Assembly (NCBI GenBank): GCA_904063045.1
Contig: CAJFCJ010000019.1
Location: 2,858,684-2,922,683 of the forward strand
Length of the DNA: 64,000 bases
Direction: 5' to 3'
From: Dimorphilus gyrociliatus
Taxonomy: Eukaryota > Animalia > Annelida
The position numbers and the translations under genes are program-made. The stretch's first letter is position 1, and every line of letters starts with the position of its first letter. Under the pieces are notes generated by a model, which was not told where the DNA came from, searched no databases, and was given only the letters and a program-made list of their open reading frames with translations. Of the stretch, positions 92-54,744 are shown one piece after another.

Positions 92-3000
92 TTGCAGTTG
101 CAGTTTCAACGCAGTCGAGCGGCCAGTTATGCTCATGCTGCCGATTCCCTAGGCCTTCAACTTCCGGACGCAATAAAAAGAGCGTCAATTTGTTCTACTA
201 GCGGAGCAACGGATAGCAATACCAGCACATTGGAGCAATTGCTTACCTACCCGATGCATCAGGTTTTCTATTCGTTGTACAAAAATATCAAGCCCTTGAT
301 GTTTCACTATCCCTCCTTTTATTCTTTCTTTACGCTTTCACGCACCTATGCCGCACTTTCGATGAATTCAATAATTCCTGGTTGTACTATTACAACAATA
401 CATAGTTTTTAGAGAGCATTCAAATAGTTGTAGAGGCAAACGAATTTTTTCTCCTTCCTCCTTTAGATTCCCAGATACATCATTACAATCCACGAACTAC
501 TAGCTCACACGCCGCACGATCATGTGGAACGTAAGAGCTTGGAGTACGCCCAGGGCAAGCTGGAAGAGTTGTCACAAATCATGCAGGATGAAGTTAGTGA
601 AACGGAGAATATCCGAAAGAACTTGGCAATTGAAAGGATGATTGTCGAAGGGTGCGATATTCTTCTAGATGTCAATCAAACGTTTGTTCGTCAAGGGACA
701 CTTATTCAAGTTATAAACGAACCCCGCAAGAATAGTAGAACCCGTCTTGGTTCTTTCTCTTCAACATTTAAAGAGTCTAAGAAAGAAGCTGTGAGACAAG
801 TCTTCTTGTTTACTAATCATATGCTTTTGACAACCAGAGGATCGTCAGGACGCTTACATTTAGCAAAGAATGAAGACATCTCATCGTGGAAAAAAGTGAT
901 AAGGGATTCTGGCGGGAAGACTTACGGAAAAATTTCATTATCCGATTGCACGCTAGTAGAAGATACGAGTTCGGATACGTTCTACTACGACGAAGAGGAT
1001 TATAGCAATGTTCGAGCTGGAGATAGCCTTCTCCCCACAGCCGCCCAACAAGATAAAGCCGACTACAACGGATTAGATTTTCGATTAATTGTTGACAATC
1101 GTACTCAAAATGGTCAACCTTGGCTCATAACTCTAGTGGCAAACAGTGTTCAAGAGAAGGCTGCATGGTGTTCTGACATATCGAGCTGCATTGAAAACCT
1201 ACATTATTCCGATCTTCTGCAAACCTCAATGGCTGAAACATCGGCTGTTACGATGCCTCAACAAGTACGCTCTGATCCTAAACTCTTCCGAGACGATATT
1301 GACATCAAGTTCTCGAGAACGCTCAATTCGTGTAAAGTACCACAAATTCGGCACGCGACCGTCGAGAGATTATTAGATCGTTTGACTGATCTGCGCTTCT
1401 TGTCAATCGATTTTCTTAACACCTTTCTACTAACTTATAGAGTGTTTACGTCAGGCACTGATGTAATTTGCGCTCTTCGAAAGGTTTATCATTCACCTAT
1501 AGAGAACGCTAAAGTTCCTATAACAACAGATGAGAAATGCGGACATGATGTAACGCACAGACACTCGTTCGATCATGAAATGCTTAGAAACGCAGCAGGG
1601 AGTCCACCCTCCAATTTTCATGGACGTCTTGCTCCCAAAGATAATAAACTACTCATTAAACCACAAGCCGAAAAGGTTCGTCGCATTTCAACGGGCGGTT
1701 TGCGTATTGAAGTGACGGGCGAAAAGCAAAAGATTGATGTTTCCGGAGCTAGTTCGTTTACTCGGTATGACCGAGCCGATTCAATAGAAGAGGTCGATGA
1801 ACCCCCTGCCTTGTATATACCAACTAAGGCAAAGTTGGCACCGATAGCTAGCTGCGAAACGTTAAGTGATCAAATTCAAAAAACCCCCGAACGTGCATCA
1901 AGTAGTGGGGACGATGACGATGATGACGATGACAAGGAAACCTTAATGCCTCTTGCTGTTCTCAGTAGACGAACTGCCGTTCGATTTTCAACAACCCCAC
2001 CAGGAGAGAGTTCAACTGATCCAGAAGAACCGAAAATATTGAAAACAGTCCGTCGTGCTACGAGTCCTTGCACAAGTATTCCACCTCCAATTATTCAACA
2101 GAAAAGGGCTTCTTCACCGCAAATTATCGCGACTAGATCACCTGTGGGAAGCCCAAAAACGAAACGCCCTCCGTCTCCAATTTCTTACTCTTTCTCTTCC
2201 CCAAATATGATTCCTGGTATAAAGCACTCAACTGACACTTTCTCTCCAAGAACAAGCTTTGCTTGTCCACCGTCTGATGGTTCTCCGCCGACGGCCAGAG
2301 CAGGAGCTGTCGTTACTTCTTCAAGGGCATCAAAACGCCGTTCAAGTAGCACTGCAGCAACAGCGGCCTTTGCTGCAGCCACGGCTGCTTCTTCTACTCC
2401 TCCAGACGTTCATCGACCTTCTCAATTGTCAAATGAGCTCAAAGTGGAAAGATTGCATAAAAAGCGAGAGTCAGTGTTGAATACGGCTGCAACAATGCGT
2501 GTTCTAAATGTTATACGTCACTGGGTGAGCAAATTCTGGCAGGACTTAGAGCACGATGATGTATTACGTAAAGAGGTTCAAGATCTCTTAGAGGAAATGG
2601 TTTGTAACACCTCGTTACTACCCGCCGAACACAAAGCTGCCGCCTCTATATTGAAGATGTGTACCCAAGAACAGGCAAACTCTATTAAAATTGACTTGAA
2701 CTCTCTTTTAGCACCTCCGTTGCAGCCGACCAAAGATTCTTTTGAATCATTATCTGCTCTAGATATTGCCGAACAAATGACCTTCCTTGATCATAAAATC
2801 TTCGTGTCTATTCGTTCTATGGAGTTGCTCAGTCAGGCTTGGATGAAGGACAAGGAAAAAGCTCCGCATGTCCTACTAGTATCAAAACGTTTTAATGATA
2901 TGAGCCGATTAGTCGTATCTGAAATTGTATCGAGGACAAGCATGCAGGAGCGTGTAGCATGTATTGAAAAATGGGCTGCTATCGGCGATATTTGTAGGTG

Positions 3001-3523
3001 CATGCATAATTATAATGGCGTTTTACAAATTTGTGCTGCACTCGTCAATTCGAGCGTCTATAGATTGAAAAAGACATGGGATCGAATTCCTAAACCTACT
3101 AAAGGAGTTGTAGAAAAGCTTCAAAATCTCGTCTCGTCTGAAGGCAGATTTAAAAATATGCGTGATGCTCTGCACCGATCTGACCCACCCTGCATACCTT
3201 ATTTGGGAATGTACTTAACAGATTTGTCCTTTATTGAAGAAGGAACACCGAACAAAACTGAAGAGGGTTTAGTCAATTTCTCTAAAATGAGAATGATCGC
3301 TCATGTGATCAGGGAAATTCAACAGTTCCAAAATACTCCCTACCGTATCGAACATCATAAACGTGTAACAAATTACATCCTGGATACGTCGAAACTCCTA
3401 GATGATGATTCAACCTACAAAGCGTCTCTCGCTATCGAACCTCGTCAGGCGCGTATTTCGGTAAACGCTCAAACAGCTTTTTCACATCGGCCGTCTCTCG
3501 GCGACGTTCTTTCGCCCCGCTAA
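92..3523 (+). CDS. RASGRF: Ras-specific guanine nucleotide-releasing factor (RasGRF), 3' part: end of DH, PH2, REM, CDC25/RasGEF. 5' exons lie outside the window.
   Basis: Exon ~92-262 ends LEQLLTYPMHQ. A GT-AG intron (263-466) follows, then a 3057-nt terminal exon 467-3523 starting IPRYIITIHELLAHTPHDHVERKSLEYA. The join reproduces the RasGRF DH-end motif (LTYPMxQIPRY). REM (IRHATVERLLDRLTDLRFLSIDFLNTFLLTYRVF) and CDC25 (PPCIPYLGMYLTDLSFIEEG, VNFSKMRMIA) motifs are present. The 5' acceptor of the first exon is uncertain (91, 97, 103, 201 or 225). Confidence 0.93.
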
Positions 3524-25013: not shown

Positions 25014-28000
25014 ATGAAAGGTTTAAAATCTTTCTTTTTCTTCCTCTTTTCCTTTCCGATAATCTTCGGATTTGAAGGTTAATAACTTATTAGGGTGTAT
25101 TTACTTAACATTCGGTTAGTTCGTTTATTAGTATTATGTAATTAATTAGCGGCTTTTAACAGAAGAGAGAGAGAAATGGTTAATTAACGCCGATCAACCA
25201 ATTACGTCACCCATTTTACTCGGTGAATACCGTTACGTTTGCTTAGGTGACTTGAATCTTTGCAACAAAGGTATTAGAATTTCATTCTGGTACAAGCCAC
25301 AACCGGGTAATGCTAACTTGGACGAAGAGTACTTGATTTCAACTGGAGGGCAATCAGCCATGTCCAATGGTTTTTACATGCGAAGAAACTATGGCAAGGA
25401 TTACGAAGTTGGTGTGGCTATTGAAGATAATTTATGGGTTTGTAATTTCTATATCATTACGGATGGATTAGTCTACTTGACCTTTACCTGGTCTAATGAA
25501 ACTGGCTTGGAGCTAATAATTGACAACTTTAAAGAGACATGTGCAACTTCTCCAAAGAAAAGACTCTACACATATCCTCAATATGATCTTTTCAACAATA
25601 TATACGTCGGCAGAGAAAATACCTATGGTGCAGAAACAAACCAATTGAATATAGTCATGTATAATTTAACTTACAGCAATAATGTGTCTGCAGAGGAAAT
25701 ACCTATTGAAGGTTATTATTTTATAAGCGTAATAACCCTTAAAACTTATTAAAATATGTATTATATTTTCAAAAGACCTTGAAAAAAATTTATTGAGAGG
25801 ATGCATAGAAAAAATTTCATCCCGAGATCCATCTGTCGCAGCTAAAACCCTTCTAGAATGCAGATCAGCTTGTAATGGAAAGAAAACAAATCAGGCTATT
25901 TTTACAGTGGACAAATGCATTTGTACTGATTGGGAAAAAATTCAGGTTAAACCTTGTGAAACACCTAATACATTAAAAGTCTATTGGGTTACTCACTTTA
26001 AAAAAGATTTTAAATATCCGATTAATTTGAGTGTAACGTATAAAAGTGCCAGGAACAAATCATATATTTTACCTGACGAAATTGTTCTATTCAATGCTAC
26101 GACAACGGCTGACGAAATGGTTAATTTTTATTTCGATTATGGAGATGGAATGACCGACGAATCTGCTATCGGTTTAGGTTCAGCATCGTGGATGACTGAA
26201 GGAACTTATACAGTAACGGTCAAAGCCGAAACAAGATTGACTACAGAAATTGTAAAAATTAACGTTACTATTAAGCAAGTTGAGGAAGGCGTACCGCCAG
26301 AAGTCGTTCAAATATATTATGGTGGAATGACTCAGAATAAAGGGGAAATTAATTTATATACTAGTGTTGTATCGCAATTTCCGATATCATGTAAATTGCA
26401 GTACGGTGACGGAGTTGAAAAAAATTTTACATTTGAAAAATTAGTCAACGAAATCGACGAAATCTATTTCTATCCTGAAGTAGGAATTTATGAAGCAGTA
26501 TTCAGCTGCTCTAACAAATACGGATATTTAATTGATAAAGTAAAAGTCTACGTTGAACAAAAGAACGCTGAATTCGAAGACATTGCTGTCGGAACAACGC
26601 AAATAATACCATTCAAAAATCCAACGAAGGAGAAAGTAAATATTTTAATAAATAATGAAAAAGTGTTTTCGTCAATCTCTCAAGATTCGATAGTATTCGA
26701 CGGAGTCAATTTAGATAAGGCAGGAGATTATTTACTTCAAGTGACGTCGATAACAAACACGCTTTTGTTTACTAAAGTACTTGGAGTCTTTCGTCCTGTT
26801 GGAGATATTGATATAGACGTTGACATTAATGCAGTCGTCTTGGGCGATGCTATATATTTTACGTTTAAAATATCCGATGGGGAAAGTTTACACATCTCTA
26901 TTCAATATGGTGACGATGCCGGTCATATGTTATATGTACCAGGAAATAAAGTAGAAAAGGATCCGACTACCATTCAATCTTCCCACTTGTATAAAGATTA
27001 TGGCGTTTATAATGTAGAATTAGAAGTAGCCAATACTATTAGCTTTAAGAAGACATCGAGAGTTGTTTCGGTAGAACGTATTATCGAAAAAGCGTCAATA
27101 AAAGCTAGCCACGTTTCAAAACTTGGGGATGAAACAACTTTTGCTTTACTGGTAGATGTCGCTAACAGTCCGACTTTGCCCATAGATGTCGACTTTCATT
27201 ACGGTAACGGTATCTTTGAAACTGTCCACTTTCCATCTAGAACGTCCCCTAGTGAACGTCTTATTCACAAATATGCCTATCCAGCATACGGTACATATCA
27301 CGTCAATGCTACACTAAAAAATAATATAAGTCGAATATACATCGATTATCAAGTACAAGTCGGTGATGATATATCGGAAATTGATTTGCTTACAAGTTCA
27401 CCTATGTCTCTGTCTGAAGTAGTAATAGAGGTCAAAGTACCCAAGGGCTCACCGGTAAATATCCATATGGATATGGGAGATGGGACAATCTTACACAAAC
27501 GTTTAGATAACCTTTTTGAAAAAACAAAACAAAGTGGAAGGAGGAAGAGGTCAATACAAAATAATCAAACAGAAATTACAACAACTATTCCATTTACTAC
27601 GACAAATTTGCTGGAAAGTTATGATTCGACAGTGGCGCCAACTATCCCAGCGGAGGATAAACAAAATAAATCTTTAAATGATCCTTACGAAATTGATTTG
27701 GGGGAGAAAGTTGAACATTTTAACGATCCAGTTTTATTTAAATATCAATATTTAAAGCCTGGAACCTATGAAATATCTGCCACTGCTGAAAATGAGTTTG
27801 GGTCAAAGTCTACTTGGCTGTGCCCAAGAATTACTATAATTCGAGAAGAAGCAGCTGGATTTTCATGCTCATCAGCAAATTTAGCAGTGGCTAATGAATC
27901 ATCACCAGACCAACCCATTCAGTGGTATCGATCATCACCTATATATTTAGACCTGTCGAACGATTTGTCTTGTGATTCCGAGGTAAAAGCTTCATACTCA

Positions 28001-31000
28001 TGGAGAGCAATGCGACTGGTAAAAGGCAAGTGGAAACCTGAATTGAATCTTTGCGTGACTAGAACAAAGAACAAAGGTTTAGTTTTGCCTAAGAATATAC
28101 TGTGGTATGGAGAGATAAAATTAGTAGTGGAAATGAGTATTGAAAAGAAGAAAGTGTCTAGAAGAAAGAGAGAAGTTGCCTCTGAGTTTGACAATTCCAC
28201 TTCTCCTATGACTACCCCATCTGTGACCTCTTTTCCGGCAACTTACACCCAAGCCGACTTAGGAAACGATGAGAAAACCTCTTCTCCACAACCAACTACA
28301 TCAGCCGATAGTGATACTAATTCGGTGGAAAAGATTCTTAAGGATGAGCAAGGCTTTTTTAGTCAACCGGATATAGATGAAGCTTACGAATCTACTCTTG
28401 TTTCAGACTCAATAGAAATATTCCTTAGCGTAGTTCCTAGCCCTTTAGTCGCAACAATTGCTTATGGGACTCGCAGGGAGGTTATGAAAGATTCTATTGT
28501 TACTATGGATGCAGACAACTCTCACGACCCGGACGTGTCTCCAAAAAATAGATCAGGGATATTTATGCATTTGATTTGTTACAATAAATACAGTGCATCC
28601 ACTGTTGACAAGCTAAAACCTAATCAATTACTGGATGAAAGTATTAAATTAATGAATAATACACTAAATAATATGGCTTTGTATGAATATGGATCCTGTT
28701 TTCAAGGAAATAGTAAACTATGGGTTCAAGGCTTTAGGGTAATAAGTTCTGTTTGAATTTTATGACTTTTAAAATGTAACTCTTTTTTAGAGTACTTTTG
28801 AAGTTCTCACACTAGGAACGAATGGAACATTTTTCTTTAAGATAATCATTGAGAAGGACAATCGACAGTCAGAATTCGTCCAAGAATTGGAGATATTATC
28901 AGTGAATATCTCTGGCAATATAAAAGATCTCCTAAATAACCTGCTCAACAGTAACGATACAAGCGGAGCTCTGTACGCTATTGATAACATTATTGGAAAT
29001 ATGAATAATTTTGTTTCGGACGATAATAATACAAATGCGCAGGAAGCGAGAAAAGAGTTGAAGGGAATGATTATCAACGTTTTAGATGGTTGTTCAAAGA
29101 GAATGGATAATTATGATCAGCTAGGATCAACTACTAAATCTGTAAATGCCGTTACGAACGTTCGAGACGAGACAACACCAGAGAGTCGTGTAAGTAATGA
29201 AAATAAAAGTGTATTAAAAATTACTGATTTTTGTTTGTTTTACGATAGAAAACTGCAGCAGAGGCTATTGGATCGTGTGGAGACAAAGTAGAAAGTTTGG
29301 CTGATGGTGTAACTCTTGACAAAATAACTGAGATGGCAACAAGTAAAAATTATTTTTTAGGATTATAAGGTATGTTTAGTAATGAATTAATTGTTCATAG
29401 GTTTAATTGGTGGCGTTGGAAATGTCGTTCCAAGAAACAACGCGAGTAATATCGATTTAAATAAGCCGGTGATTCCGGGTGAGGAATTTAGCTCTGGTAG
29501 TGGTGACGAAAGTCTATGGATAGAATCGACTATAACTCCTGAGTTATCTACTATCGCTGACATCCTCACCACAACTGAACCCCCTATCTTACCTCCTGCG
29601 ACCTGCTGTGAAAATGTAACAAAAGGGTTATGCCAATGGGTAGAACCTTTAGACAGTCCTTTGTTGGAAGATATCGATGATAGAAAAGAGTTTATTTGGA
29701 CAGATGAAGACTGTGAAGAGATTTTTCCAGACGATATTATCTTAATACAAAATCGATTTAAAGCTTGTCTTGCGCGAGACTTAGCAGCTGTAAGGAGCCA
29801 ACAGTCGAAAACAACTAATGCAGCCATGGGTGGGTCGGATAAGGTTTTATCTGTTTTGATAAACCATCAAGATGATACTAACGACGGAATCAAAATTGAT
29901 ACTCCGAATTTAAAGGCTGTTGCAATTAAAAAGAAAGCTGGGGGAGATGGAAAAATGGGATCTTTTGAGGTTCCATCAGAGGAAAATGATAAAGCTGCAG
30001 GAGCAAAGATGACAACTATGGCAAACCCCTTTGTTTTTGTTGACAGTGCTTCAAGAGTGCAATCAAATGTACAAAGCTTAACTTTAACAGATGAAACAGG
30101 AAATGTAGTTAAAGTTAACAATTCTAAGGAAAAAATTCAAATGTGGATTGATAGTAATGGGAAAAAGATACCTCCCGCAGCAGAAAAACACGTGGCTCAT
30201 CATAACATGTCATATTATCCTATAAATCTTACGTCTAATGGAATGTCTATTCATGCACTTGTATTTCCAAAGGATCCTAATGAGAGATTCGAAGTGTATA
30301 TAAAATACGGAGGCGACAAACAGTTGGTACCAACTAAAAAAGATTATGACTTTGTTCAAGTTGTACCAAGAGATGTTTCTCTTCTTATCGCTAACAAATC
30401 ACTTACCAAAGGCGAAATCGAACAATTAAAATACACATTCTTTCCACCTGCGAATGTAACTGAGCGAAATGGTTCCTACGTGCTGGGAGTATCTATTTAT
30501 GGTGCATATGTCAAAATGGAAGAAGCTAAGTCTGGTACTTTCCGCGGTAACTTTACATTCAATTTTCAAATTTTCTTGTCCGCGTGCATCTTTTGGGATG
30601 AAATAGAAAACGATTGGTCTAGCAATGGCTGTGAAGTTGGTCCTTTAACAACTAAATATAGAACGCAATGCCTATGCACACATCTGACATCGTTTGGCGG
30701 TGACTTTGTTGTTCCTCCAAATACAATTGATTTTAAAAACGTATGGGGTAACTTTAGCAATCTCAGCGAAAACGCAGCAGTATTCTCGACGGTTATCGTT
30801 CTGCTTGGGTTGTATGTGATACTCTTAGTGTGGTGTCGCTACCAAGACAAAAAAGACATTCTTAAGGTAACATATCTTATTTAAGTACTATTTCATGCTG
30901 ATAATTCTGATAATTAAAAGTGGGGAGCCACTCCTTTGGAAGATAATTTACCCACTGATGTTTACCATTATCAAGTAACAGTTTACACAGGCGTGAAGAA

Positions 31001-38257: not shown

Positions 38258-39853
38258 TTATCTCTCATACTTTATGTTATTCTTTAAGTTAGCTTTTAAA
38301 GCAGCTTTCTCTTCCTTAACCTCGCATTTCGTTGAATTAGTGAAATGAACCGTTGTTAATTTAACGGTCTCCCCACTCTCCTCTAAAATAGCAGTCGGCT
38401 TTCGAAGACAAGCAGGTAATAACAGTAATTTAAGCGTATTTCTAAAATTAGGATTGACGAAGCAATATAATATAAAATTAAAGGCAAAATTGACACTCTG
38501 ACCGACATTCGCAAAAGCTAGAAGCATGTTGTACCCCGGGGTCATTCTTCTTTGGGTACCAATCTCTTTGAGAAGTTTCATAATCTCGGTTGGAACTACA
38601 AGTACAATAAACGAAATAACTATGACCACAAGTGTAAGAGTTACACGTCTTGTAGACTCACGCTCCTTACGATTATTATCATTTCGAAATTGGCCTCTCA
38701 TTTTCGTTGAAGTTTGAAGGGCACGAATCAAATGCACGTTACAATAAAGTAAAATTATCAGAGGAGCAAATATTCCAAAGAGGCTGAATGACCACTCGTA
38801 CGCTAATGATAGAACACCGTGTTTCTTCATGAAACCTTCAGCCAAATAGAATACGCTAAAGTTTCCAACACATTCCATGCTGTTAGCAACCTCATAGAAC
38901 AATCGGGGAATATTTAAGACAATACCCATAAACCATATCAAGGATACGAGTACTATGCTGGTTTTCGTTCTTACAACAATTCGAGCTCGGATAGGTTGTA
39001 AGATTGCAACGTAACGCTGCAAAGCTATATAAACAATCAGTAGAGTTCCTGTTAATATAAACACGTTCACTAAGGTATTATGATATAATTTATAACACAA
39101 TTCGAAAGAGTAGTAGCCAAAACTGAATTGTTTTTGGTCTATCCAAGCTTCCGGTAGGAGAATACAGCACAAAAATAAATCCGAGACAGCCATTGAACAG
39201 AGTCCAATGTTGGCACTTCTCTCCAAATTACCCATACGATTCTGTAAACTTCTTCTAGTCAAAACCAGCAAGTTTAATATATTACCAATGATTCCAAAAC
39301 AACAGATAGAAGATAGAATATACTTTTTAACATAAAGTTCGACAACTTCTTCAGCTATATTATCAATAGTCTTATTAGCTCCATATCCTTTGGAATTATT
39401 AGAGTTTGCCAATGACAGTGGGATACAAATCACCATGTTGCCTTTTGTGATATATATTTTTTATGGTGATCTAGTGGCGTCACCTGTGTCGCTGTCGTTA
39501 GATTTTGATGAACTGTTGATGAAGAACTATAGACAGGAGATAATTAAGGATAATTAAGGAGAAATTAGAATTAGAATTTAGTAAAATAATTTATGTATAA
39601 TACATAATTTTTCATTATAAAAATATGAATCTAAAGGTAAGTTAAAAACCCTTAAAGAATAAGGCATACAAATTAATACATCCCAATTATAAACACAAAT
39701 TCTTCCGTAAGGATAGAATTGTCTCGGAGACCATACAAAAACACCCTTGTAAGGAATAATAGTTTAATTCATCTTTTTTATTTGATGAAGTTGATATATC
39801 GGCAAAGAAGGAAGATTTTTAAAATTTCTAATAATGGAATATTACTTTACCAT
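38258..39853 (-). CDS. Class A peptide GPCR, FMRFamide-receptor-like (~409 aa)
   Basis: The main exon 39441-38258 encodes 7 TM: GIIGNILNLLVL, MAVSDLFLC, ALQRY (DRY position), FAPLIILLYCN, RRVTLTLVVIVISF..P, NFAFNFILYC. Two upstream exons are inferred with lower confidence: 39853-39851 (ATG) and 39526-39484 (FFINSSSKSNDSDT, with N-glycosylation sites). Confidence 0.9.
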
Positions 39854-44260: not shown

Positions 44261-44432
44261 ACCCAAAAACATGGTAGAAAGGAGCAGTTGATTTCTTTGT
44301 GAAAAAATGTAAACACTAGATGGCGTTCTATTTGAAAAATTGACTAGGATTGTATTATGAATAAATAAAAAGTTCAAGAAACCATAAAGAAGAAATTGTA
44401 ATAAACTCTGCTTAGAAACAGTTTATGCATTT

Positions 44433-47400
44433 TTATAATTGACCCAAAATCTTAATGGACGAAGTGTCACTTAATGAGGAATCGCTGCAGCCATCGGGCA
44501 CCTGCGAACCATAAAAATTTGAACTAAATTGTTCGAGCTTTCTCTTAATTTCTCTTCTCCTTCTCTTTGTTAATTTAGTATTTGATTCCTTGGTTTGTCT
44601 CAAAACCGTTTTTGGTCTACCCTTTTTATCGTAGAAATAAATGAAGTCATTATCTTCTCTGACATTCTTTGTCGATATCTTCTTTGATATAGGTATAGGA
44701 ATCTCAGGAACTCGAAATTGACCCCGTTCATCTCGCTTTATCCTGTGAAAATTACTATTAGTTCTATCCACCTGTAAGGCTCTCCTTTTAGAATGAGGTA
44801 CAGGTTGGAAGGCAGACGGCAGACACTCGTCAGAGTTTGGAGAGTTATCAGGGGCTGTCGGGTCATTCCCATTTACTTCACTTGCACACGTGGCGTTTGT
44901 AGACAAATGAGCCTTGTCAGGAGATTCAAATAAATTTGACTCTTGAAGACCAAGAGCTTCTTTTGGTCTAGCAAGTGACGTTTGACCTGTTTGTCTTTTC
45001 AGAATGCGCATCCGAGCCTTTAGCGGATCGTAGATACGAAGTGGAAGATTAATGTTATCGTCGTCATTAAGGTCGTCTTCATCGCTGCATTCGCTAAGAT
45101 AAGAACTGTCATAGTCAGTAGCTACTAGTCCAATTTTCTTACTACTAGCAGGAGACGCTTTGTTAAAAATACAAGGTCCTCCAAATTTGGGATGCAGGCC
45201 ATGCTCTTTACACAATTTCTTGCTTCCACTTCTCGAATTGGAACTTCTAGAAGTTGACGTGGAACTTTTAAAGCTGTCGCTTCGAATTGCAGCCTTATCT
45301 AATGTTTTGACGCTATCAACGAATTCATCTTCACCTCCTTCCGTTTTCGGTTTATCTATGGTATCGATGATGTCATCGAACTGATCTGAGTTCAGGGTGG
45401 AATGCAGAGGGTAATTAAGCGTTGAATGAAGCGGATAATTGAAAGTTCCGTCGAAGAAGAGATTGGAATTTGACGTTCTTTCGTGTCGTAAATTAGCCGA
45501 CGTTTTTGAGATAAGAGAGATATCTTGAATTGAAGGCGGCGTGTCCGGGTCGAAATTCGACGAATTTGTCCATACGGAGGTTTGTGCGCCATCTGTTGGT
45601 TCTCGTAATTGTTCTTTTGCCTTAGGCATAAAAGAGAAATCTTCGCTAATGGAAGTCAATTGCTTTTTAGAACACCTGCAACTTCGATGAAGTTTCGAAG
45701 GAGGAGAAATGTTTTCCTTTTCAGCTTCATCTAACTTCTGCGATTTTCTCTTTGTCCTCAATCGGGTTCGTCTTGAATCGTAGGTAGCTCGAACTTTAGC
45801 GCGTGACGGCGACATGGTTTCCATCTCCATCGTATCAGATTGATGGCCAGATAGTCTTGTCTCTTTTTCAAATTTGTTTTGAGTATGAAGAACGTTCAAG
45901 AAAGCTTCTTTAATTAAGTTGACTTCTAGCTTTACTCTAAGGCTCTCTTGGATAATTTCAAGCTGAAAGGGGAGGAATGCGTCAAATTAAGGCTGTATAT
46001 ACATTAGGGAATAAGGTCGTCGTCGTACGCGAACACTTTGCAAAGTGTTGAAATGAAAACATTTCGACGGCTTTGTCAAGCGTTTTCTCATGCTGCCACC
46101 AGATAAGATCCGTATAAAAATGACAGAAGAAAGGACGACTTAATTTATCACTCGGAAACATGCAGGTATATAACGTCGGTCGAACGCACGTGGCGAAGTT
46201 GTGCGTGTATATTATACGATTTCCTACGCCTGCATTGGCGTGAAACACTATGGTATGGGGGAAAAAACGGTAAAAAACCGGGGTCAGTTTTCAAACGTCT
46301 TGATATTTTTTACGGCGACCCAAAATCTGTTTTGTCTTATCGCTTAATCGCCTTAAAAATAAACAAATTTCCCATGTCATTCTATTTAGGGAATAACGAG
46401 TAAGCGGCAGAAAATTGCAAAGGTTACGAGGTAGACTTATATTGGCCATTTTTACGACGTCACAGTTACGTCAGCGATGTAGCACGTGTGAACGGTCGGT
46501 CGAGTGTTCATTAATGACGTCGACACCTGCTAAACTAACAAGCTGAAGTAGGCCGTTGAAGAAAGAACGCCCCTCTCTGTGCCAAAAGACTGCTCGTCGA
46601 ACCGTTATATATGCGCCTTGTGACAAGGTTAGCGGAGGAGACTTTAATACGCTTATAAACGTTGCGTGACATAGTCGTATTTCATTTGTTAAAATATTCA
46701 TGCACACGGAACCGATACGCTTAATTGCGCACAGTAATTATGCGTCTTGCTAGGAAGATATGTCTTTGTCATAGTCAATGTTACATAAGGCGGCCGTAAG
46801 AAATTAAAGAGTCAAGAGCGCACCTGGAACAGGATTTCTCTTTCAATTAATTGAAATTTGTGTAATAAATCGAAAACTTCTTACCCCAGGGCTAAAGTAA
46901 TGCGGGACAATGGCAGAAAACATTACGAATATTAAAAATGGACACTGACCCTACTGACCCAACCGGCCATTACCCGGGAGACAGTCGAGTGCCTTTCGAA
47001 TAATGATGAGGCAGATGGTTATAAAGAATCATAATTTTAGATTATAAAAAAAGCGACCTTAGCATCATTAGCGCCTCATTATAAAGCATTATACATCTGC
47101 GAGTAGTTTTTATATATTCACTTTTTACTCTTAATGTTTACCACAATTATCCTATCAATATATTTATAACCGAAGTGAACGAGAGAAAACGTTCGAAAAA
47201 TGTAATTAATAACGATTTGGTCAGAGAAGTCAGTTGTAAAATTCGACCTATCGACACGGTGCTGATTGACATGATGAAAATAAATTACTACAAGTCGTGA
47301 TCGGAATTTTTCTCACAATCTGAGTTTCATCATACTCCCTACTATTCGTCAATATTTTTTTTACAGACAACGCGGCTTTGATGTAATACGTTAATGCTTA

Positions 47401-47536
47401 GCTGGCGGCTCATTTATCTATATGAAACTCGACCGGTTCATCTAAACAACGACGCACTATATTCATAACCCGACGACTAGTACGACTTCCTGCGTCGAAT
47501 GAATTAGAAAAATATTCGGAATGTTCAACTTACCAT
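44433..47536 (-). CDS. Orphan, largely disordered S/D/K/R-rich protein (~510 aa) with cell-cycle-type linear motifs (KEN box, tandem PLHST, DSSYLS, basic NLS)
   Basis: The frame is open for 510 codons from a phase-0 acceptor (CCCCTTTCAG, exon starts 45962) to the stop at 44433. The best start is an ATG at 47536-47534 immediately followed by a GTAAGT donor. An optional internal exon ending at 46540 cannot be excluded. Synonymous divergence inside the peptide repeat supports translation. Confidence 0.8.
45393..45440 (-). repeat. 24-nt tandem coding repeat encoding NYPLHSTL twice
   Basis: Unit 1 is AAT TAT CCG CTT CAT TCA ACG CTT; unit 2 is AAT TAC CCT CTG CAT TCC ACC CTG. The peptide is identical and there are six third-position differences. 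Confidence 0.95.
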
Positions 47537-47930
47537 ACGCGTTTTAGTTTCAAAATACGATCTCTTCAATCCGTCGTTAGATTTAATTTCCTTTCCTTCC
47601 ATAATACGTTTCTAGCATAGCCGGGAAAAACTGTAACAAAAAAAAAGCACCCACATTTTTATGCACGTTTCAAAAAATGTCTTCTTAACGAGGTAAAAGT
47701 TTTTTATCCTTAAAGTTTTTTACCAACTACCTTTTTATCAGAAAGTCACCTGAACGCATGCAGTTGTTAAACTGATATAACGGGGGAGGGGAGAGCTCTC
47801 ACGCCTAAATGAAAACGTGTCAGCTGTTGCGCGATCTTTACTTTCTCCCGGCGACGCGATTCAAAAAACTACGATTTGAAAGAGAAAACTGAAGTGAGAC
47901 GCGCGCGCGCGACTAGAGAAGGAGACTTCA
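47537..47930. promoter_or_regulatory. Putative bidirectional promoter with a (CG)n tract
   Basis: It lies between head-to-head ATG/GTAAGT first exons (47536 minus, 47931 plus). It contains GGGGGAGGGG, TGTCAGCTG (47818-47826) and CGCGCGCGCGCG (~47900-47911). Confidence 0.45.
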
Positions 47931-48477
47931 ATGTCCAGTAAGTTTGCGTTCGTGCAGGGGAATATTAAAACGGAAGTTTACGCATTCCTGACGCGCATTA
48001 CGATGCTTTCAGATCGGAGCAAAAAAATTGTCAACTCACTTAAACATCAAATAGAAAAACTGGCACGTTCAAATGAAATTTAAACGTCGCTTCTAGTCCA
48101 CTTAGGAATTGTATCTAGAGCAGATTTACTGATGGAACGTGCGATAGAACACCGAATACATAAAACAGAAGTGCAAATAGTACACCACCGGTCCGCCCGC
48201 CTACCAACCTCTCATAATTCCCCGTTAGTTTTTCTTACGTCATATTCAACTAGAAAGTGAAATTGGGAAACGGATTTGTTCGATTCAAGACAAAACGTGT
48301 CAGACGCTAATGAGCCGACGAAAATTAGCGGCGCGGAGAGAAAGCGAAGAAAAATGGCAAAATGAAAATTTAAACCAGTCTTCACGTCTCCCAAGGAATG
48401 TCTTTGAAGGATGCGGCTACGAATTAATCATACCAGGAGCTTTTCGCTTCGTTACTATTAATTATGGGGAGGAATAG
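47931..48477 (+). CDS. Candidate small two-exon gene (76 aa, MSKSEIGKRICSIQDKTC...), not in the ORF track
   Basis: ATG TCC A|GTAAGT (47931-47937, perfect donor) splices in frame to a pyrimidine-rich acceptor (TTTTTCTTACGTCATATTCAACTAG, 48253). The downstream frame stays open to TAG at 48475-48477. No family was recognised. Confidence 0.4.
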
Positions 48478-51231
48478 AACCTTTTTTATGTCATTCGGAA
48501 ATGGTTGTTTGTAAATAGGTCGTGTCAAACGTCCGCTGCGATTAAAGTAACTTGATGCTGGAACAGCAGAACTCCTTCGAAATAGGTGGATAAACACCGT
48601 TTCACCTCATGCACACGCAATAGTTTGCAAACGACATTATTACGTTCTCCGTTTACTTAAAATCAAATATCGTACAATTAAGTATAGAGAAACGGGAAAA
48701 CGTTCAGTTTGAATTTGTCAAACAGCATATTTTTTTATATCTAAGTAAACTTCCTAATAAAATTAACAAATGAGTAACAAACCTTATTATTTGTTGACGT
48801 GATTGACAGAAAAAATTTATGATCGATCCAAGCGGATGAAACTCTTCCTAACTGAGCGGCATCCACGAGCACAATGACAACTTGTGAAGAAAGATTTAGT
48901 CACGTGACTAGCAGCGCTTGCCGCTGATTGGCCAACCAAGTATTACAAGGGAAGATAGCAATCTACAGACGATTAATTAAAGTAAATAAATTGAATATTT
49001 CCGAATTGAAGCGTCAACGACTTATCTAGAAGATAGGAACAACAGACAAGTAAAAAATGGACCTACAATTAAATGTAATCAACGAGCTAGACGGATTAAT
49101 TATTGAACATTTAGCCGCCAATTTGCAACGATTACATAATAAAGAAAAAAATCTTTGTGAACAAATCTGTTTTTAAGTCTGAGAGAAAGGTTTGCCTGTG
49201 CTGTAAGAATGTTTTTCAAAAATACGGCAAGTAAACAGGAATTGATGTCTCCTTTTTAACGTCACGGGAGCTTTTAGAGAGCTTTCGCGACGAAGGGAGT
49301 CGATTTTCTTGGATAGGGATCGTATTCTATTACACGTGACACGTTTAATGAATTCTGAGCGACAGAGTGAGAAACAGACGAACAATTCATATATTTTTTA
49401 CGAATTTAAAGAAAAAAAATGCGCAGGCAAAACAAACTCGATGAAGCATCGCTTGAAAGGAGTGCCCGTGAGGTCTTGAACATCGTTCTCAAATTTCATA
49501 AAACCCCCATTCACATGCCAAACTTCATCTCAACCAGTCACCTAAAGAGAGGGCGTCAATAAGACGCCGACACACTTCAAACGACTGCTGTTATACTATA
49601 CGTATACACTAGTTTACCCTTTCCATAAGGTTTCGAGCTATTCGAGTTTATAGTTTCATTTCTATTATAAACGAGTCTATATGCATTGCTATGATATGTG
49701 AACAAATGTATATTTACATAGCGGACGTATCCGCTGTCGAACGTGTGACAGGGCTCAAGTCGAAATACTGCAAAATAACGAAACTTACGTAACCCGTACG
49801 CGTCATCTTCTTTGTAATTGAAGGGATTAGGTGGTTTTTTTTAAATCTATACAGACCTTTTATAGGCCACCTGCTGTACGTCCCTTTATATGCCATCATG
49901 GCTTGAAATTTAAATAAGAGCCATGTACAACTTAACGTATATTTATTTGAAATTTCAATCATGTAACCTTTAGTACAACTAGTTATTAGATCAAACAAGA
50001 GAATGGTATAAATATCTTCACTTGATTGTATACTTTGCGAATATACATTGTTTGTTTCGGTCGTATATATATTGCTTTGAATAAATAAATAAGGAGAAGA
50101 TATGTAGATATATCAAATATTCCCAGATACTCATCTCATTTACTGATAAACTATGAGAATTTTGTGAATTCTTCATTAATGATTTTCATTTCATCTCGTA
50201 TTTGCATTCTATAAAGCAAGGTTTAAATCTATATTTTTCTGTATTATTGGACAGATATATTATTATGTACCTAGCAAATAGCCTATATATATTGTATATA
50301 GCCGAACGAAATTGTGTAATAGACTGGGATTAGGCGGCATTATTATATAAATAAACGCTTATTTGACACGATTTTGTTTAGATTTTCGAACCTTGCCTCG
50401 ATGCACTGAACGTAAACGAACGTAGCGAATGTCGTAATTGATTTAAATGCGTCTATATTTATGCAGACGTATAAACAAAAAACAAAAAAAATACCTCAGC
50501 CCGACACTATCGATGGATAGATACAAATGAGTCGATAAGACGCTCATTACCCCAGCGCTTTAAATTGGCGTTAAAGGATCAAATTTCCAAATTGCGAATA
50601 AAAGAGTATAGTCTTTGTGAAAAATGGAAAAAAAAAGAAATTATACGACTTACTTTACACCCGCATGGACTGGCGCCCGAATTTGAAATGACGTGGATCA
50701 AAACTAATCGTCTGGTCAAAAAAGCAGCATGAAGTGTTTGTCAATGTCTCTAATTACACTTAGATTCGATCTGCAATTCGTACTATCGGTTGTGAGTGAT
50801 CTAACATCAAAAGATGTAATAGGTGGAAACTTTCGATAATCCGAAATATATACTTGTACTTATTATACAAGTAAAAACTTCAATGGGCCATTCGATATGG
50901 AACTTCAGCTGTTCAAATACAAAAAGAGTCTGTCTTTTGAAGTTGGTCACAGAAGAAACGCTTTATAATCGCCTTGACGTAATCGACCCCTCCAACTTGC
51001 ATTACAATGGCAAACAGATGTTTGTCAAGATAGAAACTGAATAAACTAAACGGCATAGTGACGATAAACGATAGATAAGCGTTGATTGACGTCGAATATC
51101 GGTTTTCGGACGTCTACATATTATATTTACAAGCAGCTGCAAAACGTTTCGAGTGTTTAAGTGCGTACTAAATTACAAAAGTATTTTAATGCTTCTAATG
51201 CACTGATTACGAATGAACGTAAAAAACAAAC

Positions 51232-53433: not shown

Positions 53434-54744
53434 TTAGGCACTCAATCTTTTGTTAGGAACAGTAGTCGAACCATTTTTCAGGCAATCTCTAAGACGACGT
53501 AACGACGGAGCTAATGATTGAATTATATAGGTTGAAATTCCCGAGTGATTTGTCGAAGAGTACTTTGTATAGATGAATTTTGTTTGCACGAATTGTTCAT
53601 CAAGAAGCAACTCCAAAATAACGATAACCGTTGGTTTTAAATCATATTCTGATAAACCGCTTAATTTCTCCATATTGCTATTCCAAGTGGGTTCAATAGT
53701 TGGCAAAATTTTCCTCGTTATATACACCGCACAGGAGGAGCGGAGTAAATTATCCATGTCAGAAAGCTTATCTTCATACAAACTTAATTCGCAGATGTAA
53801 ATCGCCATTTGTTTATAAATTTTCATTAATCTTCCTTTTGGGAGGGTTAACTTAAGTAAAAATTCTGTAAAATCATTAGGAGTGGGTACAAATAAATCGA
53901 AATCGACGCTTTTTAAAATATCCATTTCTGTCTTACGGACAAACGATACATTTTTAATGAAATTACAGCGTTTAGCAACTGTGCGCATTGATAAATGTAC
54001 TTGTTCAACCGCCTTAATTGCCATGTTCAAGCAAATCGTGCCAACTAAAAGAACATTTCTCCATTCAGGATGAATCCACAAACGTTCAACAACTCGATCG
54101 TACAATGAAACAGCTATGAAAAATGTTTCATCTTCATATGGTGGAAGTTTCATCTGTAAATCACACATTGAGTTTAAGACATGCTCCCGATACTTGGCTA
54201 ATTCTGCTCTGCATTCATCAGCATCGGAAAAGGAAATTTTGGAGCCTAGCGTTTTTTCCTTCTTCTTAAGATATTTAAAGATATCTAATTCCAAATCGGC
54301 ATCTTCATACCCATTAGAAACCAGACACCTAATTATCTGCCTTTCGCTATTCGAACGCGACCACTTACGTTTTACAGGCTTAAACAAGTTATTAACTAAT
54401 TCTGGATTTCCCCTTTGGGTATTGTAGAAAACATCATCTTCTAAATCGATTGTAGATGACGATTCATCGCAGGGTGTCGTCAAGCTCACACGAGAAATTG
54501 AGTTGGTTAAATCTGTTAAAGCTCTTCTCTTGTCTGTTTATTCAAGAAAACATATAGAAGGGGATTTGAAATGGAAGACGGAGTATAATGTATACGTACT
54601 AATTCCCGATGGCTTACCCTCTGGACCGTTTCCAATCCCCTTGCTGTCGGTAAATATTTGCAAACTTTTAACAGTATTCATTACTCAAATAAATCGTACT
54701 TACGAGCGATTTTCAATGTTAGACATACGCTGAATTTTCTTCAT
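53434..54744 (-). CDS. Divergent A/B-type cyclin with an N-terminal destruction box (~388 aa)
   Basis: Exons 54744-54704, 54643-54618 (alternative acceptor at 54664) and 54533-53434. D-box RRALTDLTN. Cyclin folds: ETFFIAVSLYDR, LLVGTICLNMAIK, TEMDILKSVDFDLFVPTPNDF, AIYICELSL, SCAVYITRK, WNSNMEKLSG, KYSST. Confidence 0.9.

Follow-up and report, generated by a model that had tools for sequence, protein, structure and literature searches.

A 64-kb window of the genome of the annelid Dimorphilus gyrociliatus (the window being the whole stretch of DNA analysed, to which all positions refer) contains on its minus strand a gene for a 532-residue protein, DgyrCDS12014. The protein belongs to an uncharacterised, unnamed family that is found in annelids and a brachiopod. 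It is read here as a largely disordered scaffold, timed by the cell cycle, that would dock both Polo kinase and the phosphatase PP2A-B56 and would be removed through a KEN box; judged from its sequence, we put the probability of this reading at roughly 45 %. Gene structure, transcription, membership of the family, motif conservation and disorder were established directly.

The PLHST peptide and its companion motifs

The short peptide PLHST is the family's most conserved feature, present in 126 of 147 family proteins against 0.1 expected by shuffling. In an alignment of 28 sequences (A1), from which the statements on column conservation are drawn, Y-P-L-H-S-T is invariant. The Dimorphilus protein carries it within GTFNYPLHSTLNYPLHSTL (residues 195–213; 45393–45449, minus strand), which holds two perfect Polo-box-type units in an 8-residue register, with T204 and T212 as their threonines. 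The stretch FNYPLHSTLNYPLHSTL is present, and its two NYPLHSTL units lie at 45417–45440 and 45393–45416 (−). The unit codons, AAT TAT CCG CTT CAT TCA ACG CTT and AAT TAC CCT CTG CAT TCC ACC CTG, differ at six sites, all of them third positions and all silent, as an earlier reading of the DNA made from the sequence alone (the sequence-only reading) had observed. Sets of six random substitutions proved wholly silent in 6e-5 of simulations, and selection on both copies is therefore indicated. That reading had also proposed that the peptide is under selection and had set its conservation in orthologues beforehand as a check; the invariant columns and the family count bear this out. By comparison of the family sequences the duplication of the NYPLHSTL unit is old, many relatives carrying both copies.

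Among 109 distinct contexts of the peptide, Thr occupies position 0 in 108, preceded by Ser at −1 (109), His at −2 (100), Leu at −3 (99), Pro at −4 (109) and Tyr at −5 (108). Position −7 is Phe in 80 contexts, Leu in 13 and Met in 6, while position +1 is Leu, Met or Pro in 62, 18 and 11, respectively. An additional S-T pair eight residues upstream (FHST) is found in 99 of the 109 contexts and a third pair, eight residues downstream, in 39. In Dimorphilus the Ser of the upstream pair has been lost (DGT), yet two perfect YPLHST units are present.

The Polo-box motif is S-[pS/pT]-[P/X] (PMC11549336). H-S-T-L, occurring twice (T204 and T212) where the predicted local distance difference test score (pLDDT) is mostly below 50, fits this core in an accessible region. 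In the crystallised PBIP1 ligand, F71-D-P-P-L-H-S-pT78-A, Phe71 inserts into a Tyr pocket, and binding in cells depends on this residue (PMC6828814). The family unit F-N-Y-P-L-H-S-T matches this ligand at six of eight residues, and with Phe at −7 included the fit is even better than the likeness to PBIP1/CENP-U first proposed. Tandem docking likewise has a precedent, in that two neighbouring CENP-U sites hold a Plk1 dimer (PMC11549336).

A paralogue subfamily from the same genomes (P0096, P0117, P0101 and P0089) has PLQST..YPQHSTP instead of FHST..YPLHST[L]; P0096 and P0027 are located on one 3.1 Mb contig. PLQST resembles the optimal MQSpTPL peptide, and YPQHSTP carries a Cdk-type +1 Pro in place of the hydrophobic +1 residue. 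As judged from these peptides, variation among paralogues is confined to changes that the Polo box tolerates. The preference [P/F]-[hydrophobic/P]-[hydrophobic/A/Q]-[T/Q/H/M]-S-pT, which reportedly goes back to work by Elia et al. in 2003, is compatible with all of the variants.

Several further motifs accompany the peptide, and in the AlphaFold2 model they sit in disorder between confident helices. The KEN box (residues 105–107; 45711–45719, −) directly follows the second predicted helix, in a disordered stretch. K105, E106 and N107 are nearly invariant, and KEN is found in 108 of 147 family proteins (12.7 expected by shuffling), so its singling out in the sequence-only reading was well placed. 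As a disordered, conserved tripeptide it has the motif features of an APC/C (anaphase-promoting complex/cyclosome) substrate. An LxxIxE-type motif, LTSISE (residues 125–130; 45642–45659, −; consensus LTPIKEE), had been missed by that reading. LTPI[KR]E is typical of most close relatives; the pattern L[ST]P[IVL].E was counted in 42 of the 147 family proteins (0.5 expected by shuffling), and its place is in every case between KEN and PLHST. LxxIxE is the docking motif for PP2A-B56, which can bind more strongly when residues inside the motif or following it are phosphorylated (PMC6363451). LTSISE fits the pattern [LMFI]-x-x-[IVL]-x-E, is conserved and lies in disorder, and is thus a candidate PP2A-B56 site on sequence criteria.

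Further along the chain is an acidic Ser cluster, TDYDSSYLSECSDEDD (residues 305–320; 45072–45119, −), nearly invariant from T305 to E314. It includes DSSYLS (45093–45110, −), and D[ST]S[YF][LIM]S is present in 54 of the 147 family proteins (0.1 expected by shuffling). The proposal that DSSYLS is a beta-TrCP-type degron stands as to conservation and falls as to type, the Dimorphilus sequence lacking the Gly of the phosphodegron D-S-G-x-x-[ST]. Elsewhere in the family DSGxx[ST] is found in 58 of 147 proteins (7.2 expected by shuffling). The two CDK sites that had been listed, SPSR (45801–45812, −) and SPDK (44913–44924, −), are present and not conserved, while NSPN is conserved. All motifs named by the sequence-only reading were found on the minus strand at the positions it gave. 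Candidate readings as a D-box (RTRL), an ABBA motif, a PIP-box and an RVxF motif were dropped after inspection by eye, being not conserved or a misfit.

In the mechanism proposed, the N-terminal 50-residue helix would dimerise the protein, and the basic second helix together with a conserved C-terminal module would place it on some cellular structure. In M phase the Thr of the tandem [F/L]-N-Y-P-L-H-S-T units would be phosphorylated, and the phospho-Thr would then dock the Polo-box domain. Polo itself may phosphorylate the unit Thr, as at PBIP1 Thr78; such self-priming is conceivable, given a hydrophobic residue instead of Pro at +1. Docked Polo could phosphorylate nearby sites, such as D-S-S-Y of the acidic cluster, PP2A-B56 bound at the LxxIxE motif would oppose this phosphorylation, and the APC/C would remove the protein via the KEN box at mitotic or meiotic exit. 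Each binding and timing step in this sequence of events is inferred from motifs. The combination has a parallel in BubR1, where LxxIxE and a Polo-box motif stand alongside KEN boxes and serve the antagonism of Polo and PP2A-B56 (PMC11549336, PMC6363451).

Gene, protein and family

The locus is a real, spliced, expressed three-exon gene. The interval 44433–45962 (−) translates to a sequence 100 % identical to DgyrCDS12014 and belongs to the last of its three exons, the first of which is non-coding; the coding exons were searched separately, and the database record P0001 served as the full-length protein. The mapped 3′ part of exon 1 (48783–48811, −) is 5′ untranslated region with the donor aag/gtttgt, the GT following 48783, and the true transcription start is further upstream. 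Exon 2 (47534–47630, −) contains the start codon at 47602–47600 and residues 1–23 (MEGKEIKSNDGLKRSYFETKTRM), with gtaagt following its phase-0 end; the translation of 47602–47534 is identical to P0001 at 23 of 23 positions. Exon 3 (44409–45962, −) encodes residues 24–532, with the stop codon at 44433–44435 and a short 3′ untranslated region, the X7 transcript contig ending at 44409. A splice acceptor, cctttcag (ag at 45964–45963), directly precedes base 45962. The frame of the open reading frame 44433–45962 was therefore correctly called in the sequence-only reading, whereas its start was not, 45962 being the base after the acceptor. The TTG at 45899, the mechanical start of the open reading frame, is likewise not a genuine start, the first 23 codons sitting on the upstream exon.

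Transcription in this frame, the other check set beforehand, is seen in two contigs. A 1680-nucleotide contig of run X7 (depth 38.8) spans 44409–45962 and 47534–47632; the 1571 nucleotides skipped in between have GT..AG ends in minus-strand orientation. A contig of run X5, from a strain approximately 95 % identical, has the same splice joint. Both join 45962 to 47534, and the reading frame is therefore transcribed. The 27 loose 5′ letters of the X7 contig match 48785–48811 exactly. A trans-spliced leader as their source was ruled out, because the letters map to an exon within the window and the species has no trans-splicing (PMC7854359).

The two introns, of 1571 nt (45963–47533) and 1152 nt (47631–48782), are about twenty-fold longer than the median intron of the species (66 bp), and long introns in this genome often contain open-chromatin peaks (PMC7854359). 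Just upstream of exon 1, at about 48905–48935 (−), are a CACGTG and a CCAAT box. No Rfam match was found across the locus and its introns. Contigs of a coral metatranscriptome (run X1) match 45866–46137 and 46356–47119, in the intron and at the intron/exon border, with 92–94 % identity, and a low-depth X7 contig lies within the intron at 46614–46777. These contigs may be either unspliced RNA or DNA of a coral-associated Dimorphilus relative, or an intronic transcript.

AlphaFold2, run with the family alignment, gave a whole-protein pLDDT of 53.6 and predicted a helix at residues 10–60, a basic helix at 75–103, about 350 disordered residues with two weak hairpins, and a helix at 489–507. The N-terminal helix (residues 10–60; exon-3 part 45854–45962, −; consensus LEIIEEGLQLKLEIQSIKEQF; pLDDT 85–97) is conserved from annelids to Lingula and, on the model, is a probable coiled coil. 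The second, basic helix (45723–45809, −; consensus ARARVRALYEARKARL; pLDDT 71–91) has R77, V80, Y84 and R90 nearly invariant. A Cys/His block, LCKEHGLHPKFGGPCIF / LCKEHGLHPKFGGPC (residues 273–289; 45165–45215, −; pLDDT about 58), has the spacing C-x2-H-x2-H-x6-C; L273, C274, E276, H277, G278, H280, G285, C287 and F289 are nearly invariant, and the block also occurs in Lingula. It may be a small zinc knuckle in a protein that is otherwise disordered. The RQT block, RILKRQTGQTSL (residues 342–353; 44973–45008, −), with R346, Q347 and L353 invariant, follows a predicted beta-hairpin (332–343) and is a site of basophilic-kinase type, with Leu at −4 and basic residues at −3 and −2. PDNSPNSD (residues 394–401; 44829–44852, −) is the only conserved Ser-Pro site, P394 and P398 being nearly invariant.

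The C-terminal module (residues 463–532; 44436–44645, −) comprises short strands and a basic amphipathic helix (KRRRREIKRKLEQFSSNF) and ends in IKILGQL (consensus IQTLGHF); a KRRRREIKRK patch is contained within 44514–44567 (−). The module aligns to that of Lingula with an hhalign probability of 98 %, and folded alone it is predicted to form three short strands and a helix (pLDDT 64.2). Foldseek and VIA-align searches with the models of the whole protein and of this module found no known fold, the best Z being 2.9. Conservation in the family is focused on short blocks, namely DKEN, LTPIKEE, TS(I/V)W, D-x-S-x-IS, REQ-x-SS, GAFHSTFNYPLHST(LNYPLHST), LCKEHGLHP-x-FGGPCIF, TDCDSSYLSEC, L(K/R)RQTGQ, NSPN and, at the very end, RKK-x-L-x-KKLKQF...IQTLGHF. 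TS[IV]W is present in 88 of 147 relatives against 0.9 expected by shuffling.

A word search returned 39 relatives of the DgyrCDS12014 protein, and a profile search of 1.84 billion representatives returned 119 cluster representatives at E<=1e-3, of which 79 were at E<=1e-10. The label ‘orphan’ given to the protein in the sequence-only reading was therefore wrong. Named members come from the annelids Dimorphilus, Paralvinella palmiformis and Capitella teleta and from the brachiopod Lingula anatina; Paralvinella palmiformis also has a paralogue with a neighbouring number on the same contig. Every one is annotated as hypothetical or uncharacterised, as had been anticipated for this protein. The Lingula member, LOC106177522 (P0129), has six isoforms and has retained KEN, NSP and DSGITS together with the coiled coil, the Cys/His block and the C-terminal tail. 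A word search from it toward other phyla returned only the Lingula protein itself. With a cutoff of E<=0.1, no Pfam model was matched by any of 65 family members, and the exon scan was likewise empty. Sequence searches of the PDB gave only noise with the protein (STING) and, with the family profile, no chain at E<=10 except RecF noise. No family member was found in the literature or in the supplements of the genome paper, and no second member within the window.

Machine-called relatives (P0005, P0006, P0011, P0014 and others) often start M-(F/L)-Q-LEIIEE. The F/L-Q resembles a translated ttt/ctt-cag acceptor, which suggests that a phase-0 intron before LEIIEE is conserved across annelids. Of the genes surrounding the locus, an open reading frame with Cyclin_N and Cyclin_C domains (53434–54489, −) lies on the same strand approximately 5 kb upstream of the first mapped exon, probably by coincidence. 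Other neighbours encode a polycystin-like protein with PKD/REJ/GPS domains (25793–30884, +), a rhodopsin-type G-protein-coupled receptor (38258–39436, −) and a RasGEF (524–3523, +).

Alternative explanations and significance

Several observations weigh against a scaffold for Polo and PP2A-B56. The literature gave no binding, localisation, phosphorylation or stage-specific expression for any family member, and the match was obtained by scanning known motifs, to which a look-elsewhere effect applies. The B56 motif of Dimorphilus is the weaker LTSISE, and a distant subgroup is without LxxIxE; nor does Dimorphilus have an equivalent of the canonical DSGFST that relatives carry close to the C-terminus, and Lingula has NTHST alone at the YPLHST site. 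Tyr motifs found in many relatives (GDYVxLK and DNYDYVE) could point to other signalling. Additionally, the Polo box requires mainly Ser at −1 and the phospho-Thr, and the conservation of Y, P, L and H exceeds this need; the units may therefore have a different reader or priming kinase. The 8-residue spacing makes the units overlap, the +1 residue of one being the −7 residue of the next, and two Polo boxes may therefore not fit at once.

The main alternative retains the same conserved, disordered scaffold and has YPLHST read by a partner other than Polo, either another phospho-Thr reader or a phospho-independent groove, in a role outside mitosis such as that of a signalling adaptor. The surplus conservation of Y-P-L-H and the Tyr motifs of relatives favour it, as do the PPPRPPK repeats of Lingula P0129 and the assorted disordered scaffolds (APC, AMER, dendrin) that are the language-model neighbours of a typical member. 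However, KEN, a strong-class LTPIKEE and an exact PBIP1-type peptide are conserved together, for which a cell-cycle role is the simplest explanation, and Dimorphilus has lost the Tyr motifs while keeping KEN, LxxIxE and PLHST. A non-Polo reader is regarded as less likely than not, and is the rival that deserves most weight. Chance matches in low-complexity sequence, of no function, are scarcely credible: short motifs are common in disordered proteins, and SPSR, SPDK and RxxL are indeed unconserved, but PLHST, KEN, TS[IV]W, DSSYLS and LTPIKE exceed their shuffled expectation 8- to 1000-fold across the family, and with all six differences between the units silent this explanation is already contradicted by conservation.

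Orthology to Shugoshin, CENP-U, Bora, Sororin or meikin, with divergence too great for sequence methods, is very improbable. The layout of N-terminal coiled coil, disordered middle and basic C-terminal motif is Shugoshin-like, and an ESM Atlas feature search with the Dimorphilus protein ranks Shugoshin clusters first (0.82–0.84). Atlas scores below 0.9 are leads only, however, and the match was not reproduced with the typical member P0020. Pfam holds models for Shugoshin, CENP-U, Bora and Sororin, none of which is matched by the 65 members, the family profile is empty in the PDB, and the C-terminal module has no known fold. A Shugoshin identity on the strength of the 0.84 score was thus rejected, and the CENP-U- or Bora-like homology claimed in the sequence-only reading is not borne out. 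Overall, that reading was right that the motifs are real and selected and wrong in ‘orphan’, and its homology claims find no support.

A more specific form of the Polo-docking reading, and a doubtful one, is that the family is a Polo receptor of lophotrochozoans, with an origin separate from those of CENP-U, Bub1 and Bora. Its PBIP1-type peptide would have evolved independently, and its overlapping 8-residue units would act as a phospho-switch that is opposed by PP2A-B56 on the same chain and erased by the APC/C via KEN. In a variant, the protein would itself be an Emi2-like APC/C inhibitor in spiralian oocyte arrest. Acting as a pseudo-substrate, it would block the co-activator through KEN and make additional contacts through the Cys/His block and the conserved C-terminal tail; docked Polo together with DSGFST would trigger its beta-TrCP-dependent destruction, buffered by PP2A-B56. 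The motif set fits, with KEN, a Polo-box motif, the DSGxx[ST] of relatives, LxxIxE, an invariant RRQT, the Cys/His block and an invariant extreme C-terminus, and the regulatory logic of Emi2 runs parallel to it. Against this, the family is without an F-box, an IBR-type zinc-binding region, a conserved D-box and an RL or IR tail, has no Pfam or PDB match, and in Dimorphilus is without DSGFST. The proposal is pure analogy and is considered improbable.

Known Polo receptors come nearly all from yeast, flies, nematodes and vertebrates, and their evolution is too fast for homology searches to find them in other phyla. The family is a concrete, testable Polo-receptor candidate for spiralian cell biology, with an invariant, crystallographically understood docking peptide plus KEN and B56 motifs. 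If the reading is true, it would be a clean case of an independently evolved PBIP1-type ligand; if the prediction fails, a widely conserved unnamed family that deserves a Pfam entry is still at hand. The proposed role makes the family worth an experiment.

Comparison with known systems

MEIKIN, Moa1 and Spo13 are Polo recruiters that evolve fast and are disordered over most of their length; they carry APC/C degrons and, for targeting, a short conserved motif at the C-terminus. MEIKIN is further marked by a C-terminal motif that binds CENP-C and by expression specific to meiosis I. Unlike the family described here, these recruiters use S-T-P sites. Emi2/Erp1 is similar in its regulatory logic of Polo docking, a beta-TrCP degron, PP2A-B56 recruitment and an APC/C-directed motif, whereas the family is without its F-box, zinc-binding region and RL tail and shows no homology to it. 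Bora, likewise a disordered Polo regulator, has a parallel in the canonical DSGxxT degron of relatives (Dimorphilus excepted), but is itself without an N-terminal coiled coil or KEN, and its N-terminal region (Pfam Bora) was not detected in the exon scan or in the 65 members. Shugoshin shares the N-terminal coiled coil, the long disordered middle, the basic C-terminal motif and links to PP2A-B56 and Polo. The Pfam models of its coiled coil (Shugoshin_N) and of its basic SGO motif (Shugoshin_C) match neither the exon nor the 65 members, and Sgo1, in a further difference from the family, binds B56 without an LxxIxE motif (PMC6363451).

BubR1, with its KEN boxes, Polo-box motif at T620 and KARD LxxIxE, brings the same three motif classes together in one disordered stretch (PMC11549336). 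The family differs in being without the TPR, the Bub3-binding region and the kinase domain, in the order and spacing of the motifs, and in docking sites that are of PLHST type and not STP. With PBIP1/CENP-U, the human Polo kinetochore receptor, no homology extends outside the motif; the C-terminal CENP-U domain, which pairs with CENP-Q in CENP-OPQUR, has no Pfam match among the 65 members, and CENP-U is without the KEN-plus-LxxIxE pair. What the two nevertheless share is F-x-x-P-L-H-S-T with Phe at −7 and, as in ligands of the self-priming type, a residue other than Pro at +1. In both, docking sites lie next to one another and the peptide is placed in a disordered region, the docking sites of the family being distinguished as exact repeats in an 8-residue register.

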